This document shows positions 1,601 through 11,717 of a stretch of DNA of 11,717 nt, in pieces (the first letter of the stretch is position 1; each line of letters opens with the position of its first letter). Source of the DNA: Prasinococcaceae sp. CCMP 1430 (taxonomy: Eukaryota; Plantae; Prasinodermophyta); assembly GCA_013416795.1 (NCBI GenBank), contig RQSC01000014.1:416612-428328 (forward strand). The letters are read 5' to 3'. The translations under genes and the position numbers were made by a program. Under the pieces are notes generated by a model. It did not search any database and was not told where the DNA came from. It saw nothing but the letters and a program-made list of their open reading frames with translations.

Positions 1601-3637
1601 TCAGAAGTTGGCGAACGCACGCCGGGCCTCCGGCGTCGGGTGCGGCGGCGCCGGGTCGTCGACCCAGCCACTGATGCGCGACTTGTCCTTCTTGAGGCGC
1701 GAGGGCTCAAGGGGCGGCGCGAGCTTGCGCGAGCGCAGCTGCTCCCACGGGAAGTTGTGGAACCACGGGTGAGCCTTGATCCCCGCCACGCCCAGCGCCG
1801 AGTGGCCGAGGCGCTGACTGGGCTTGCGCTGCAGCAGGCCGCTGATGAACGACACGGCGTTCTTGGAGAGATACGAGGGGAAGTTCACCTCCCAGCTCGG
1901 GTTGATGATGCGACGCATGATCGCCATGGCGTCCTCCGATGGCCGGCCGAACGGCTGCTGCCCAGTGAGCAGCACGTACGAGAGCACGCCCAACGACCAC
2001 CAGTCCACCGACGTGTTGTAGCCGTTCGCGAGGATGTTCTCGGGCGCGACGTACCCGGGCGTGCCGCAGAAGGTGTACGTGCGGCCGTCCTCCGAGTTTA
2101 GCTCTTTCGCGAAGCCGAAGTCGGCCAACTTGATGTAGCCGTTCGAGTCGAGCATCACATTCTCCGGTTTCAGATCGCGGTACACGATGCCTTGCGAGTG
2201 AATGAACTCCAGCGCAAGCACGAGGCTTGCGACGTAGAACTTGGCCGTGTCATCGTTCATTCCCATGAGGACGCCGTCGTCCTTGCGGTTGCTCTTGACA
2301 CACTCGTGCCACTTGCGGGGGGTCTGGCGCACCTCCGCGACCAGGATCAGGGCGTCCATGAGGTCACCGCAGTCGACGTAGTCGAAGACGAAGTACAGGT
2401 ACGACTCGTCGTGGAACGTGGCGTACTGGCGCATGATGAAGGGGTGCTGCAAGGTGCGCGTGATCCTCTGCTCACAGAAGACGTGGTCGGAGCAGTGCGC
2501 CACGTCGTTCTTGCGCATGCGCTTCAGTGCGTACTCGCGCTTGGTGGACCTCTCGCGTACGAGGAACACCGCCGAGAAGGCGCCGAAGCCCAGCAGTTTG
2601 ATGCGCGCGAGGTTGTCCACATCCACCTCGAGCTGAGCGCCCTTTTCAAGCTCAACCAGACGCTGCTTGATGTTTTCGGACGACTTCTCGCGCTCCATGA
2701 TCGCTTGGAGGGGGCCCAGGACCTCGTCGAAGACGCAACGGTGCAGCACGAGCACCTCAAGAACGTCCGACACCGCGCGCACCGTGGCGTTGCGGGGCTC
2801 GTCCTTGAGCAACGCTCTCTCACCGAAGAAGTCCGCGCGAAATAGCTGGTTGACCGTCTTCTGCGCCTGGCCGTCGTCGATGGTTACGGTGGCCTCGCCG
2901 CTCTTGACGATGTAGAAGGCGTCGCCCATCTGCCCCTCACGCACGACGACGTCGCCCGCGCGAAATTGCTTCTCCTCCATCGCATCGACCAGGCGCAAGC
3001 GCTCGCGCGAAGTCAGGTTTTTCAGGAGCGGCACGCTGTTCAGGAACAGCTCTAGCTCGCTCGTGTCGGCCTGCACCGCCTTGCGCAGGTTGCGGCGGAA
3101 GGCCGCGCGCTCGACAACGAACACCTCGGCCTGCGTGACCGCCGCGACCGTAGCCGAACGCTTGGTGCGCATGAATAGCGCCACCTCGCCAAAGCATTCT
3201 CCTGGCCCCTTGGTGTTCACGCGGACCGAGACGCCATGCCGCCGCTCCAGCACCTCGAACTCGCCCTTCTTGACGATGTACATCTCGTCGGCCGCCTCGC
3301 CTTCCTCGTCCTCAACGATGAGCAGCTCGCCTGCGGGCACGGAGCGGATGTACACCGTCTCGACGACCTGTCGTTGCGCTGCCGGCTGTAGGCGCGCGAA
3401 CATCGGCACCTTGAGCGTCAGCGTGGCCGCGACGGTGTCCTCGTCTTTGGTTCCCGCGACCGAACCAATTTCGCCCGTGCGGCGCTTGGCCGGCGAGTAC
3501 TGCGCGTTGGCGCCGCCCGAATGCCCGGCGTGACCGGCCGTCACCGCCTTCTGGCCGCCGATGAGCGCGCCGAGCGAGCTCCTGCCCTGGTTGTCGGCGC
3601 CCACGCCGCCGCCGCCACACATACCCAGGAAACCCAT
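1601..3637 (-). CDS. Cyclic-nucleotide-dependent AGC protein kinase (PKG-like): two cNMP-binding domains plus kinase domain; 678 aa from ATG 3637
   Basis: cNMP cassettes FGEVALFMRTKRSAT and FGERALLKDEPRNAT. Kinase motifs GFGAFSAV, ALK, YRDLKPEN, DFG and TFCGTPGYVAPE, with C-terminal FxxF (FANF*). ATG 3637 (MGFLGMC) has context GCCGACATGG. The true 5' end is uncertain because the frame stays open to 4237. Confidence 0.92.
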   Translation of the reverse strand: MGFLGMCGGGGVGADNQGRSSLGALIGGQKAVTAGHAGHSGGANAQYSPAKRRTGEIGSVAGTKDEDTVAATLTLKVPMFARLQPAAQRQVVETVYIRSVPAGELLIVEDEEGEAADEMYIVKKGEFEVLERRHGVSVRVNTKGPGECFGEVALFMRTKRSATVAAVTQAEVFVVERAAFRRNLRKAVQADTSELELFLNSVPLLKNLTSRERLRLVDAMEEKQFRAGDVVVREGQMGDAFYIVKSGEATVTIDDGQAQKTVNQLFRADFFGERALLKDEPRNATVRAVSDVLEVLVLHRCVFDEVLGPLQAIMEREKSSENIKQRLVELEKGAQLEVDVDNLARIKLLGFGAFSAVFLVRERSTKREYALKRMRKNDVAHCSDHVFCEQRITRTLQHPFIMRQYATFHDESYLYFVFDYVDCGDLMDALILVAEVRQTPRKWHECVKSNRKDDGVLMGMNDDTAKFYVASLVLALEFIHSQGIVYRDLKPENVMLDSNGYIKLADFGFAKELNSEDGRTYTFCGTPGYVAPENILANGYNTSVDWWSLGVLSYVLLTGQQPFGRPSEDAMAIMRRIINPSWEVNFPSYLSKNAVSFISGLLQRKPSQRLGHSALGVAGIKAHPWFHNFPWEQLRSRKLAPPLEPSRLKKDKSRISGWVDDPAPPHPTPEARRAFANF

Positions 3638-3886
3638 GTCGGCCGCCTCTGGAGCCGCGCTCGCGCCTGGTGCGCCCGCGCCTGCTTCGGAGGCGCGAAA
3701 GAGCTCGGGCGGGAGCTCGTGCCCCTCGGTCTTCGAGAAGCAGCCCCAGTCGCTGCGCGAGCGCACGAGGTGCGCCCCGCTCACTGGCGCTGCGTCCGGC
3801 CGACCAGTCGACGGCTCCCGGGCCCAGCCGTGATCCGTCGCGGCCACGCGCGGAGGCGCGCTCGCGCCCCCGCCGCGCTGGCCGCG

Positions 3887-4237
3887 CTCGCAGCCCTGGA
3901 TGGCCAGGAAGCGGTAGGGCTCGTCCTTCTCGCGGATGCCATCGAAAAAGATGGGGAGGTAGTAGTGGTAGTCAAGCTTCGCCACGTCCGCCTTCCACTT
4001 GATGCCGTTCTTCGACGCCTTGTGGTCAACCGAGATGGGCAGGTCGCCGCGCTCGTAGTACCTTCTGAACTGCGTGTTGGCCGGGTTGGAACGCACGTCG
4101 AACGCGCCCGCCTTGGGCGGCGCAAGGGGCTTCGGCTCCGGCTTGAACTCGCCCGCCTTGATGCGCTCGCCGTCACCGCGCTTGAGGAAGCGCTTCGGGT
4201 CGGGCTTCTGCGTCTTCCAGCGCAGCGTGCCATCCAC
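3887..4237 (-). CDS. PACRG: PACRG N-terminal half only (flagellar inner-junction protein), in frame with the kinase
   Basis: PPKAGAF...NTQFRRYYERGDLPISVDHK...WKADVAKLDYHYYLPIFFDGIREKDEPYRFLAIQG matches recalled PACRG sequences closely. It includes the FLKRGDGE segment of chlorophyte PACRG. The C-terminal half (ILPVIPQLIIPIK...YMVPTYES) is absent from all ORFs in the window. Confidence 0.9.
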
Positions 4238-4240
4238 GCC

Positions 4241-4241
4241 N
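4241..4241. other. Ambiguous base N, possible collapsed assembly gap
   Basis: The only N in the window, 4 nt upstream of the PACRG ATG. Confidence 0.6.
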
Positions 4242-7589: not shown

Positions 7590-8517
7590 CTACCGCAAAC
7601 TCGTCGTCCACAAAAACTTCACCACCGAGAGCACGATGATCACAGGCACCCCGAGCACAAGGTAGGGAGAAAACGTGCCGACGACCTTCCCGACGGGTCC
7701 CAGCTTCTCGAGCAGTTCCTCTTGGTCCTGCAAATTCTCCTCGCTCTTGATGCCCGCCACCTGGTCCGCCATGCTGCGGTAAGGGCTCGCCTTGCGCCCC
7801 AGCACCGAGTCCTTCTCTTCCTCAGTCATCCTCGGGGTGTCGTCCTCGTCCACGAGCTCCTTCCACTCGAGCATCTGGCAAATGGGCGGCGGCGCGTCAG
7901 ACATGCGCGCGCGACTCGCGCGCGCGCACGGGCAGGGCACAGCGGGCGCGGGCGCGTCGCAGAGGGCTCGCAAACCGGGCTCTGGTCGCGAAGGCGCGCC
8001 TCACCTCCTCGGCCAGCACGCGCAGCGTCAGCAAGTCCTCCGGCAGGCGCTCCGCCATGATGTCCGCCAGCGCCTCGGAGAGCTCCTCGCGACTCACGCC
8101 GGACTCGTCCTCGATGCCGAACTGCTCACGGCGCTCGGCGACCGCGGGGTCCTCTGCGCGCGAGCCGGTTGGCGACAGCAGCAGCGATGCGTGGAAAAAT
8201 TAGCACGCGCGATGATGATGCATGCACGCACGCACGCACGCACGAGGGCGGTCTCTCTCTCTTGCGCGCGCGCACGCGCGCGTGCGCACGCGCGCGGGTC
8301 GCCCGCGGCAGGCACGCACGCGCCGAACGCACCGATGGCAAGCGTGAGGCGCAGCTCCTCCGGGTTGAGGTCGCGCTCCGCCTCGAGGTACTTCACGATG
8401 GCGTAGATGCCGTTGGCCAGCTTGACGCGCTCCTCGTCGTCGGCGCGTGCCGCGTCGCCGGCGGGCGCGCAGCGCGCCTCACGGGCGGGCCACGCGGGCC
8501 ACGCGCGCCGCAGCCAT
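7590..8517 (-). CDS. Y3IP1: Ycf3-interacting protein 1 homologue (thylakoid photosystem I assembly factor), spliced; exons ...-8333, 8153-8005, 7874-7590
   Basis: Spliced product reads KLANGIYAIVKYL...ELRLTLAI/EDPAVAERREQFGIEDE..SREELSEAL..I....PEDLLTLRVLAEE/MLEWKEL...YLVLGVPVIIVLSVVKFLWTTSLR*. This matches the recalled plant Y3IP1 pattern, including the C-terminal TM helix. Both introns preserve the frame. The start codon is unresolved (see findings). Confidence 0.85.
7875..8004 (-). other. Y3IP1 intron, 130 nt, phase 0
   Basis: GAG|GTGAGG donor, TCTGAC branch point, TGCCAG|ATG acceptor; joins LAEE to MLEW. Confidence 0.9.
8154..8332 (-). other. Y3IP1 intron, 179 nt, phase 1
   Basis: G|GTGCGT donor, GCTAAT branch point, GCGCAG acceptor; restores the EDP motif. 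Contains a (GTGC)5 microsatellite (8224-8243). Confidence 0.9.
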
Positions 8518-8640
8518 CGCCTCCCGCCGAGCGCACGCCCCGCAGCAGCGCGCGCGCCGAGTGGGTGTGGCACCCCACTCCCACCCCCAACGCGCTGCGC
8601 TGCAACGCGCGCGCCGCGTGGATCAGGTTCGCACGGATCT

Positions 8641-8945
8641 CACACAATTCACAAAAATTAATTCGCCCCGTCGAAATACGATAATCACCATATCTTAGCC
8701 CTCATGTGGGAGAGATATATTTCCGCAGCTTTCGCTGCCGCCGCCGCCCTCCCGGCGGGTGCGCGCGCAGCCGACGCGTTTTTTTTTTTTTTCGTTCCCT
8801 GCCGGTCCTCGTCCTCCCGCCGGCGGCTCATCCGCGGGCGTTGATAGGGATCTTCGCGCGACTCGAGCGTTATCCAATCCGGGATCGCGCACTGAATGAC
8901 GGGCCGTAGATGGGGATCGATTTTTTAAAATTAATTATTTTTCCC
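8641..8945. promoter_or_regulatory. Probable divergent promoter region between Y3IP1 (-) and the sORF/SET locus (+)
   Basis: AT-rich patches at 8641-8720 and 8920-8943, a long T run near 8780-8792 and CCAAT at 8874-8878, between two divergent genes. Confidence 0.5.
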
Positions 8946-9209
8946 GTCGTTCGTGCGTGCGTTCGTGGCAGTCCTCCTGCCGGCGGCTGGTGGAGGGAGC
9001 TGGCGACGTGACTGCGGCACAGTGCACCCCACCCCACCCCTACACACACACACACCGGCGCCCTCGCTCCCCTTCCGATCCGTCCCTCCTCTGCGCGAAG
9101 CCGTTGGTGCAGGCGCTCCGCGGCGCCGGGCAGTCGACGAAGGCGGGGCGGGCCGTCGACGAAGGCCGGCCGCGCGCGCGCGCGCGGCGCGGCGGCCCCT
9201 CGCGCGGGG

Positions 9210-9380
9210 ATGCACGAGGCGCACGAGCACCTGCTGCTCGACGAGCGCTGGGACGGCGCGACTGCGGAGCACTACGCCGTCGCGGCGCTGCTCGTGCTCG
9301 TGCTCGCCGTCGCCGGGGGGGCGATCGTCGCGTACCTGGTCGCGCTGTCGGCGGTGCGCAGGCAGAAGAAGGGCGAGTGA
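9210..9380 (+). CDS. Small single-pass membrane protein, 56 aa (MHEAHEHLLLDERWDGATAEHYAVAALLVLVLAVAGGAIVAYLVALSAVRRQKKGE); not in the ORF track
   Basis: It is the first ATG downstream of the AT-rich patch at 8920-8943. G/C third-position bias is nearly complete. It has an acidic/His N-terminus, a hydrophobic stretch of about 27 residues and a basic RRQKK stop-transfer tail. Confidence 0.7.
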   Translation: MHEAHEHLLLDERWDGATAEHYAVAALLVLVLAVAGGAIVAYLVALSAVRRQKKGE

Positions 9381-9385
9381 GCGCA

Positions 9386-10588
9386 ATGGCGGATGCGGTG
9401 CGCGCCGCCAGGTCCAAGTACGGCGTGGGTCTGTTCGCGCGGAGGGAGCTGCGGGCAGGCGAGGCGGCGTTGCGGGAACGGCCGCTGCTCTTCGTGGTCT
9501 GCGGCGGGCGCCGCCACACAGTGTGCGCCGTCTGCGGCGAGCAGGGAAGCCGGGTGCGGTGGGCGTGTGCGGGCGGATGCGGCGCGCACTACTGCTCGCG
9601 GGCCTGCCTGGAAGCAGACGGACACGGTGCGCATGCAGCCAGGCTGTGCCGTCGCCTTGGCCGAGCGCCGTCCGCGTGCAAGGCCGCTGGCGTCACGCAC
9701 CCCGACGGCGCCGACGCGGTACGCTGGGCGCTCCACGCGCTCTGGCTCCGTGAGAGCAGCCCGGACAGGTGGCACGCGCTGCGCAGGCTCGAGCCGCGAG
9801 ACGAGGATCCCCTTCCCGAGCGTGCGCACGAGGTCCTCGCTGTGCACACGGAGTGTGGCCCCCGCTCCGCGGATAAGCTCATCGATGCCATCTCCCTCGC
9901 CTACGCGGACGAGGGCGAGGGCGAGGGTGCGCGCCTCATCGGCAGCAGCGAGGCCGTCGCACACGCACCGCCTCTGCCGCTGCTCAGGCACCAGCCCCTG
10001 CTGCGCCTGCTGCTTCGCGACGCGCTCAACTCCACGTGCCTCACCGTGGACCCGACCAAGTTTGGCGGCTCGCCCACGGACGCGGCGATGCGCGAGCCCG
10101 CTGTCGTATGCACGTACGCCACGCTGTGCCTGGCCAACCACGATTGCGCGCCCACGTGCGCGCGCGTCGACTCGCGCCCTGCGATGCGCTACGGCGAGGT
10201 CGAGCTGCGCTGCATGATGGACGTGCCCGCCGGCGCCGAGGTCACCATGTCGTACCTTCCGATGGGCGCGACGCGTCACGAGCGGCGTGAGCGGCTCCTG
10301 AGCACGCACGCCTTCGAATGCGCGTGCGAGCGGTGTCAGTGCGAGGCCGCCGAGGAGAGAGATGGCGAGGGCACCACCGAGCACGCGTCTTACTTCTCCC
10401 TGGTGCAGCTGCGGCACGTGTGCCCGTCGTGCGAGGGCACGCTATACCCGCAGCCACGCGCTCGAAAGGGCGAGACTCGCTACGTGTGCAACAACTGGCC
10501 GTGCAACTACTCGCGCTCCGAGCAAGAGTTCTTCGAGCTGCTCGAGGAGGCCTTCGGCTACGGCGGCGGCGGCGACGAGTCGGAATGA
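9386..10588 (+). CDS. SET-MYND lysine methyltransferase, ASHR2/SDG39-like (400 aa from ATG 9386)
   Basis: N-SET strand GVGLFARREL and MYND cysteines (CAVC...CAGGCGAHYCSRAC...H...LC). Also NHDC, EVTMSY, post-SET CACERC and a C-terminal HASYF...CPSCEGTLYP...CNNWPC zinc module, like recalled plant ASHR2. The track extension to 8957 is non-coding-like. Confidence 0.88.
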   Translation: MADAVRAARSKYGVGLFARRELRAGEAALRERPLLFVVCGGRRHTVCAVCGEQGSRVRWACAGGCGAHYCSRACLEADGHGAHAARLCRRLGRAPSACKAAGVTHPDGADAVRWALHALWLRESSPDRWHALRRLEPRDEDPLPERAHEVLAVHTECGPRSADKLIDAISLAYADEGEGEGARLIGSSEAVAHAPPLPLLRHQPLLRLLLRDALNSTCLTVDPTKFGGSPTDAAMREPAVVCTYATLCLANHDCAPTCARVDSRPAMRYGEVELRCMMDVPAGAEVTMSYLPMGATRHERRERLLSTHAFECACERCQCEAAEERDGEGTTEHASYFSLVQLRHVCPSCEGTLYPQPRARKGETRYVCNNWPCNYSRSEQEFFELLEEAFGYGGGGDESE

Positions 10589-10609
10589 GAGGGCGTCTCG
10601 TGAATCGTC

Positions 10610-10614
10610 TGTAA
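10610..10614 (+). terminator. TGTAA polyadenylation signal
   Basis: UGUAA about 22 nt after the SET stop codon, in an AT-rich patch. Confidence 0.6.
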
Positions 10615-10754
10615 ATGTACCATATACTGTACTCATTTGCGCGCGCGTTGGCCTCTGCGCCAGCGTCAGCGCCCCATCGGCTTCGAGTCGTCGAGTCTTG
10701 GCGGTGGTCGTGCGCTCGCGGGCGGCCCCGGCTTCTGCGCACGCACTCGCGCTT

Positions 10755-11609
10755 TCAGCATCCCGCGTTGAGGCCTCGCCGCTGCGCCAGCGCTTGTCTC
10801 CTGGCTTCCTTCGTGCGCGCGAGCGCTGCGTTTATCCTGCGCTTGGGGTCGAAGGGCGCCTGCTTGACGCTGCCGCCCAGCACCTCGGACGCCTCCTTGC
10901 GCACGATGCCCGTCTGTGTGGAAAACAGTCCCGCGGCGACGTCGTTCTCCTTGTCGAACAACGCATCCTTGTCGGGCTTGTCGGCTGGCTCCGCCTCCTC
11001 GACAGTCGGCATGAGCGGCACAAATTTGGAAGTGATCTCAGCGGCCGCGCCAGCGTTGGCACCAGCGCCCTGAGACTTTGCCGGCGACGGCGAGATGAGC
11101 GATATGCTCGGCGCAGCGCGCGCGCGCCGAATGGCCGCCTCGTCGGCCGTGAAGCTCTCCGTGATGCAGCAATCGCTGTCGGGCGAGGCGGCCACGATTG
11201 CGCCCTGACCGAGGGTGCTGTGGGGCGCGACGGGCGGTGGCGTGGCGGCCTCGCCCTCGCGCAACGTGAAGAGCGCCGCCGCGCGACTCCTGCTCGCGCC
11301 ACCCGTGGCCGCTTTCGCGGCGGCCGTCCCCTCCTTCTTGACCATGACCGAGGCCGCGCCGCCGGCGGCCGGGCCGCCCGCGGCGGCCTGCCCCTTGCCC
11401 ATGCCGCCCTCGGCGCCTCCCTCAGCGGCGTCCGCGCGCTGGCCAGCCGCCACCACGGGCGTCTTGGGCGCGCTCAAGGCGCGCTCGTGCGCCTCGAGCA
11501 GCTCGATGAGCACCACGCTCTTCTGGTTGGCGTGGAAGCCGAGCTTCTTCGCGCGCCGCTGCAGCTCGCGGCGCGGCATCTCGGCGATGGGCCTCTTCCA
11601 CTTCCCCAT
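10755..11609 (-). CDS. 284-aa protein with N-terminal SAP/HeH-like motif, disordered middle, KEN box and basic C-terminal helix (NuSAP-like architecture)
   Basis: ATG 11609 (MGKWKRP). RRELQRRAKKLGFHANQKSVVLIELL is SAP-like. It also has DKEND, several SP/TP sites and a C-terminus TKEARRQALAQRRGL. Codon bias is coding-like; stop TGA at 10755-10757. Confidence 0.75.
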   Translation of the reverse strand: MGKWKRPIAEMPRRELQRRAKKLGFHANQKSVVLIELLEAHERALSAPKTPVVAAGQRADAAEGGAEGGMGKGQAAAGGPAAGGAASVMVKKEGTAAAKAATGGASRSRAAALFTLREGEAATPPPVAPHSTLGQGAIVAASPDSDCCITESFTADEAAIRRARAAPSISLISPSPAKSQGAGANAGAAAEITSKFVPLMPTVEEAEPADKPDKDALFDKENDVAAGLFSTQTGIVRKEASEVLGGSVKQAPFDPKRRINAALARTKEARRQALAQRRGLNAGC

Positions 11610-11717
11610 CGCGGCCCGCGCTCGCACCGCGCGCCGCCTCGTCGCGCCCCTGCCGGCGAGGACGCGCGCACAGACGGGCCTGCGTAGGGCGCCGGGCGCC
11701 GGCCGAGGCGCACCCGG

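Follow-up and report, generated by a model that had tools for sequence, protein, structure and literature searches.

A predicted membrane microprotein encoded directly upstream of a SMYD-type methyltransferase: a probable bicistronic, uORF-like arrangement in Prasinococcaceae sp. CCMP 1430

Hundreds of nuclear loci in green algae are known to carry two open reading frames (ORFs) and to express both from a single mRNA with a cap and a poly(A) tail (Gallaher et al. 2021, PMC7896298). In curated sets of these bicistrons the medians are 291-357 nucleotides (nt) for ORF1 and about 1100-1200 nt for ORF2 (Duenas et al. 2025, PMC11892635), and in Auxenochlorella (A. protothecoides) the spacer between the two has a median of 40 nt, with some pairs overlapping (PMC11892635). 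The 5' untranslated regions (UTRs) are short, ATGs are depleted before ORF2, the Kozak-like contexts of ORF1 are weak, and leaky scanning has been demonstrated by in vivo mutagenesis (PMC11291117/PMC11892635); ORF1 frequently encodes a very small membrane protein, with OST4, TOM22 and Pkr1 as examples (PMC11892635). Here, we describe a locus in a stretch of 11,717 nt from Prasinococcaceae sp. CCMP 1430 (contig RQSC01000014.1, positions 416,612 to 428,328; hereafter the window), in which an ORF of 56 amino acids (ORF1) ends a few nucleotides before the start of a SET- and MYND-type (SMYD-like) lysine methyltransferase gene (ORF2). The geometry of the two ORFs, an RNA contig over their junction, the coding signature of ORF1 and its constraint within the species are directly supported by our data; the locus is probably a bicistronic arrangement resembling that of an upstream open reading frame (uORF), and as such it involves no new mechanism but one of a kind already known in green algae.

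ORF1 extends on the + strand from the ATG at 9210 to the TGA at 9378-9380 (171 nt), and ORF2, which is intronless, from the ATG at 9386 to the stop codon at 10586-10588 (400 amino acids, 1203 nt). The frames differ, and the sequence GCGCA (9381..9385) forms a 5-nt spacer between the stop codon of ORF1 and the ATG of ORF2; the coordinates given in a preliminary description of this DNA, which was made from the sequence without database searches, were thus reproduced. The only ATGs on the + strand in 8600-9600 are those at 8704, 8896, 8910, 9210, 9386, 9393 and 9577, leaving 8911-9209 and 9213-9385 free of ATGs in all frames; their absence had been noted between the two starts, where it holds, and from 8941 to 9209, where it begins earlier than was stated. 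The ORF1 start lies in the context GGGG-ATG-C, that of ORF2 in CGCA-ATG-G, and all four of the first ATGs of the main ORFs in the window have G at +4, where ORF1 has C.

The locus shares with the green-algal bicistrons a short ORF1 (171 nt), a longer ORF2 (1203 nt), differing frames and a short spacer (5-7 nt; see below), as well as the lack of an extra ATG before ORF2, an ORF1 start without G at +4 and a tiny predicted membrane product of ORF1 (a 'pioneer' protein). This likeness had been proposed in the preliminary description, and the geometry indeed fits the published sets (PMC7896298, PMC11892635). The published bicistrons, however, are defined by full-length transcripts, H3K4me3, ribosome profiling (Ribo-seq) and peptides, whereas this locus is defined by its sequence and by RNA contigs; moreover, many published pairs are conserved across species, whereas ORF1 is species-restricted (see below).

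The closest single precedent is a Chlamydomonas pair, Cre03.g152505/Cre03.g152500, an obligate bicistron in which a Pkr1-family endoplasmic reticulum membrane protein (357 nt) comes first and a SET protein (2169 nt) second (PMC11892635); it is supported by Ribo-seq and conserved in Volvox, and its 5' UTR measures 95 nt and its spacer 70 nt (PMC11892635). Both loci have a small, ER-type membrane protein (predicted, in the case of ORF1) upstream of a SET cistron, a likeness in which the SET proteins were compared by description and which may be coincidental. ORF1, with 56 residues and one helix, differs from Cre03.g152505 in having no match to Pkr1, and the spacer of 5-7 nt from the 70 nt found in Chlamydomonas. 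The pair had been suggested to be possibly an undescribed one. The microprotein itself matches no Pfam family, but a SET gene preceded by a small membrane protein has a precedent in Chlamydomonas.

Evidence for transcription came from RNA contigs, in which holes prove nothing, 5' ends are not mapped and the presence of two features on a single molecule is not provable. The run X1 is genuine RNA, because it holds a contig spliced at 8153^8333 (GT..AG, minus strand); the identical junction was found in the marine metatranscriptome X4. A 271-nt, unspliced contig of X1 (record 2, depth 10.7) matches 9240-9510 without a mismatch or gap and comprises 141 nt of ORF1, the 5-nt spacer and 125 nt of ORF2. 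Because this contig spans the junction, most of ORF1 is co-transcribed with ORF2. A second contig (X1 record 4), whose depth of 15.8 is similar, covers 9525-10621, and exact pieces of ORF2 are present among the metatranscriptome contigs (X4 record 13 and X5 record 18). The second X1 contig ends about 11 nt past a TGTAA motif at 10610, itself 22 nt past the ORF2 stop, and we place the approximate 3' end of the transcript at 10610..10621. The preliminary description had relied on this TGTAA as the sole such signal, located after ORF2. The motif is there, and the one other copy on the + strand is at 1511, but the minus strand of the window has zero copies, despite carrying at least three genes; with TGTAA missing from the 3' ends of the minus-strand genes, the motif is not a dependable poly(A) marker in this window and constitutes weak evidence.

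The sequence of ORF1 has the properties of coding DNA. Its GC content by codon position is 0.81/0.40/0.965, and 55 of its 56 codons end in G or C; the codon periodicity begins at about 9210, persists to 9380 and shifts phase at 9386 into ORF2, and in a permutation test none of 20,000 shuffles matched the periodicity contrast of ORF1. The leader (8950..9209, + strand), a GC-rich, ATG-free and non-coding promoter-proximal region which we infer to be transcribed as a 5' UTR, is devoid of codon periodicity. In a codon log-odds model built from three confident window genes against their own off-frames, ORF1 scored 0.77 bits per codon, as compared to 0.57±0.25 for true coding windows of equal length, and the remaining two + frames across ORF1 had negative scores; among the 38 ATG-initiated ORFs of 40-150 amino acids in the window, ORF1 ranked first. 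The second-best score in this class (0.56 bits per codon) belongs to a 104-amino-acid ATG ORF on the minus strand, at 7590-7904, which lies between an ABC transporter gene and the intron-containing gene and could represent either a genuine small gene or an exon. Two alternative gene models over ORF1 were rejected. Prokaryotic gene callers extend ORF1 upstream in frame to a GTG or TTG start (84-117 amino acids), but indels of 22 nt, 3 nt and 1 nt shift the frame between haplotypes; because these upstream indels destroy any in-frame extension, the ATG at 9210 is the start of ORF1. Also rejected was an antisense gene: the candidate ORFs on the minus strand, 8931-9386 and 9040-9519, lack an ATG, are of low complexity and traverse the indel-rich leader.

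The product of ORF1 has an acidic, His-rich N-terminus (residues 1-21, net charge -5), followed by a hydrophobic helix of 27-28 residues (residues 22-49, encoded by 9273..9356) with a maximum Kyte-Doolittle hydropathy of 2.76 over a 19-residue window, and ends with a basic tail, RRQKKGE. The single helix predicted from hydropathy agrees with the membrane microprotein proposed earlier. Since the charge distribution fits the positive-inside rule, the product is predicted to be a single-pass protein with its N-terminus out and its C-terminus in the cytosol. No Pfam family was found for ORF1; at E<=10 there were just sub-threshold matches to generic transmembrane families (DUF6338, LapA_dom) and none to Pkr1, and the hydropathy profile shows one helix, not the two-helix architecture of Pkr1.

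Look-ups of the exact proteins returned 16 environmental contigs, mostly from Tara Oceans metagenomes and about 99% identical to the window. An alignment of 16 sequences, that is, the window and 15 of the environmental contigs (L019 was inspected for the spacer only), revealed 18 sites with single-nucleotide polymorphisms (SNPs) and four indel events in the 260 nt of the leader, 27 SNP sites and no indels in the 1203 nt of ORF2, and one SNP site and no indels in the 171 nt of ORF1. The sole SNP in ORF1, at position 9303, is a conservative replacement of Leu32 by Ile (L32I) inside the helix. A neutral segment of 171 nt would carry about 8-9 SNPs at the diversity of about 5% seen at synonymous sites and in the leader; ORF1 has one, and the difference in polymorphism between ORF1 and the leader was significant in a set of 12 sequences (Fisher p=0.004). 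In the same set, the SNPs in ORF2 were 15 synonymous and 11 non-synonymous. The variation in the leader includes a 22-nt direct (tandem) duplication (GTCGACGAAGGC...) at 9136-9157, present or absent across wild haplotypes, and repeats of varying length, (CA)n near 9040 and (GC)n near 9170-9191.

The spacer measures 7 nt (GCGCGCA) in all 16 environmental contigs (L003-L019) and 5 nt in the cultured strain, whose own gap-free RNA contig confirms the shorter form. In L019 the SET protein is identical to that of the strain, yet the spacer has 7 nt; the 5-nt spacer is a strain-specific slip of a GC dinucleotide. As a result, the frame of ORF2 relative to ORF1 is -1 in the strain and +1 in the wild contigs. 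One further candidate, P0005/L014 and P0007, was taken up as a divergent relative and then rejected; it is a contig of the same species, at 0.25x coverage (ena kelso), with many frameshifts in both ORF1 and the SET gene, most likely the result of sequencing or assembly error and not the mark of a pseudogene.

ORF2 (9386..10588, + strand) matches the Pfam SET profile with 27.5 bits, as compared to a cut-off of 22.4 (residues 126-290, profile positions 43-104), and its best matches among solved structures are SMYD3 (E=5.5e-17, in two stretches) and then SMYD1, in agreement with the SMYD-type methyltransferase named in the preliminary description. The SET domain is split by a Cys/His-rich, MYND-like insert (CAVCG...CGAHYCSRAC...H...C), which scored below threshold against Pfam zf-MYND, and is followed by a post-SET Cys cluster (CACERCQC). 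These three features are shared with the SMYD family (plant ASHR1-like); animal SMYDs have a TPR-like C-terminal domain, in place of which ORF2 has a short Cys-rich tail. Because the GVGLF motif, at the N-terminal end of the SET domain, is found from residue 13 onward and no further Met occurs in frame until far downstream, the ATG at 9386 is the only workable start of ORF2.

We suggest that a single mRNA, whose transcription would begin upstream, in the divergent intergenic region at about 8600-9200, would carry ORF1 and the SMYD gene as its two cistrons, with the AUG of ORF1 presumably present on it. Some scanning ribosomes would start at the ORF1 AUG (GGGG-AUG-C) and produce the 56-residue, single-pass membrane microprotein; others would bypass it, encounter no further AUG in any frame over the next 173 nt and initiate at that of SMYD (GCA-AUG-G), so that ORF1 would also set the level of SMYD translation. 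Reinitiation is unlikely after an ORF of 57 codons followed by a spacer of 5-7 nt. Since, in addition, 5 nt are too few to hold an internal ribosome entry site, we favour leaky scanning as the way in which ribosomes reach ORF2. In our judgement, the chances are about even that the SMYD mRNA has ORF1 as a translated upstream cistron for a single-pass membrane microprotein restricted to the species, and that leaky scanning gives access to ORF2. The microprotein might be either fast-evolving or of recent origin, in which case a de novo birth within the GC-rich leader is possible; that it is a recently born, species-restricted protein, which arose from the leader of the SMYD gene and has been kept by selection as an obligate upstream cistron, is a tentative extension to which we assign a rather low probability.

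Several observations weigh against translation of ORF1 as a functional cistron, and the first concern the locus itself. No RNA contig covers the ATG of ORF1, the interval 9210-9239 or the leader, and the best one begins 30 nt after the ATG; transcription may start within 9211-9240, and no RNA-derived 5' end was found among the contigs from the exact-protein look-ups, all of which are Tara metagenome DNA or multi-gene Logan contigs. The depletion of ATGs, taken alone, gives a P of about 0.04-0.14: between 8913 and 9385 there is one ATG, that of ORF1, as compared to 3.5 expected from composition (P=0.14, a single locus with little power) or to about 4.9 expected from the density of ATGs across the window. 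The weaker start context ascribed to ORF1 was correctly quoted, including the C at +4, but comes down to the +4 base, because the ATGs of both ORF1 and ORF2 have G at -3. Finally, with a single substitution and a synonymous divergence (dS) of 0, constraint on the ORF1 protein is inseparable from constraint on its nucleotide sequence.

The remaining points concern conservation, on which the preliminary description had made its proposal depend; none was found beyond the species level in any search. A word-index search with ORF1 gave matches from the same species alone, an exhaustive HMMER search of 1.84 billion protein representatives gave same-species matches only (90-100% identity), and a scan of the JGI metagenomes with ORF1 confirmed nothing. 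A feature search of the ESM-Atlas reached at best 0.85, with bacterial hypothetical proteins, which is below the useful level. Judged from these searches, ORF1 is a taxonomically restricted (orphan) ORF. For the SET protein, single-sequence and profile searches detected one relative beyond the species, P0004 (loci L001/L002), with 50-56% identity, and a JGI metagenome scan with the SET alignment confirmed nothing. Upstream of the SET gene of L001/L002, the sequence has neither a small hydrophobic ORF nor coding periodicity, and tblastn of ORF1 against this region found no match (best E=0.24, on the wrong strand); the adjacency to the SET gene that had been put forward as a check is thus absent from the sole distant relative. 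L001/L002 are, however, not syntenic with the window, their neighbours being unrelated genes, and the comparison tells only that the pairing of ORF1 with the SET gene is not ancient. In L001 the SET/MYND gene (784-2004) lies directly 3', on the same strand, of a gene (2-220) with a C-terminal MYND-like zinc finger (CTRCRQAFFCSQACLERSYERHKPDC), and the leader between them has ATGs at 469, 567 and 586, one of which is in frame, 66 codons upstream of the aligned start.

An alternative is that ORF1 is a regulatory uORF, translated merely to throttle SMYD, and that its peptide has no function. The geometry would be the same: in algae the spacing between uORFs and the main ORF is statistically indistinguishable from bicistronic spacing (PMC11892635), and uORFs and bicistrons have been described as a continuum (PMC7896298). 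Like regulatory uORFs, including those encoding conserved peptides (CPuORFs), ORF1 is an AUG-initiated ORF inside a 5' leader that ends just before the main ORF and is expected to lower its translation, and the lack of a conserved peptide, together with its absence from the distant SET relative, also fits this alternative. CPuORFs, however, require conservation of the peptide across species, which ORF1 does not have among the 1.84 billion representatives, and ordinary uORFs have neither codon bias nor constraint, whereas ORF1 has both. A regulatory uORF needs an AUG and a stop codon; it does not need a codon usage better than that of the genome's own genes, nor a clean transmembrane helix with a positive-inside charge distribution, nor near-zero polymorphism over 171 nt beside a highly polymorphic leader. 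We regard a purely regulatory role as unlikely.

It is also conceivable that SMYD is made mainly from a monocistronic mRNA that starts inside ORF1 or just after its start, with ORF1 carried by a rarer, longer isoform or left untranslated. The RNA over ORF1 begins at 9240, 30 nt past the ATG, no contig falls on 8868-9115, and partial and obligate polycistronic loci are equally common in Chlamydomonas (PMC7896298). That the contig begins there, however, is a matter of low depth (about 11x) and of breaks in the assembly close to the (GC)n tract and does not map a 5' end; were transcription to start inside ORF1, neither its periodicity from the first codon onward nor its constraint would be explained. 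A transcription start between 9300 and 9386, which the preliminary description had singled out as telling against a bicistron, is ruled out as the exclusive start by the contig covering 9240-9510. A predominantly monocistronic SMYD mRNA thus seems to us quite unlikely.

Less probable still, and by a good deal, is that ORF1 is non-coding and open by chance within a GC-rich 5' UTR, its periodicity due to triplet-like repeats and its conservation to an element acting at the nucleotide level. An open frame of 56 codons is not in itself surprising, because stop codons are rare at about 75% GC, and GC-rich frames readily spell helices of Ala, Leu, Val and Gly; ORF1 does contain short repeats (CTCGTG x2.5 and CACGAG x2), and it has no homologues. 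These repeats, however, cover about 25 nt and are too limited to explain the periodicity, which, like the G/C-ending codons, fills ORF1 and stops at its ends. The codon score of ORF1 is the highest of 38, indels are common in the leader and absent from ORF1, and a search of 8500-9600 against Rfam returned nothing at E<=1. That ORF1 serves as an N-terminal membrane anchor of SMYD, whether splicing, frameshifting or readthrough connects the two or a recent mutation has split them, is hardly credible, even though the ORFs are 5-7 nt apart and there is a GTGAG overlapping the stop codon of ORF1: over the junction, RNA contig and genome are colinear, ORF1 has its own TGA stop followed by a spacer leading into another frame, the relation of the frames differs between strain (-1) and wild contigs (+1) with both ORFs intact and is therefore not that of a frameshift or readthrough fusion, and the in-frame N-terminal extension of the distant relative has no transmembrane segment.

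Other features of the window were noted. The upstream divergent gene (ORF 8094-8573, minus strand) has a 179-nt intron at 8154-8332, with an X1 contig depth of 157, and is by far the best represented window gene in X1. On the other side, the RNA contig of the convergent neighbour, a gene for a 290-amino-acid protein (10755-11627, minus strand), starts at 10610, and the 3' ends of the contigs of this gene and of the SET gene (+ strand) share about 12 nt. A single N is present at 4241, just upstream of a long kinase ORF (1601-4237, minus strand).

In the literature searched, no paper linked Prasinoderma with polycistronic transcripts, and such loci were unreported there outside the Chlorophyta. 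If the bicistronic reading is true, and if the genome is that of a Prasinoderma, leaky-scanning polycistrony would occur outside the Chlorophyta and may predate the split between Chlorophyta and Streptophyta; the continuum from uORF to cistron would then be a cradle for new genes. With confirmation, a membrane microprotein missing from the annotation would enter the gene catalogue of a picoplanktonic, deep-branching green alga, and the range of nuclear bicistronic expression would widen. The locus would offer a clean natural case, with a spacer of 5-7 nt and no intervening AUG, of a uORF becoming a gene, and one for studying how the strength of the ORF1 start tunes a chromatin or protein methyltransferase. 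It is also a warning for annotation, in that pipelines retaining the longest ORF per transcript miss such cistrons.

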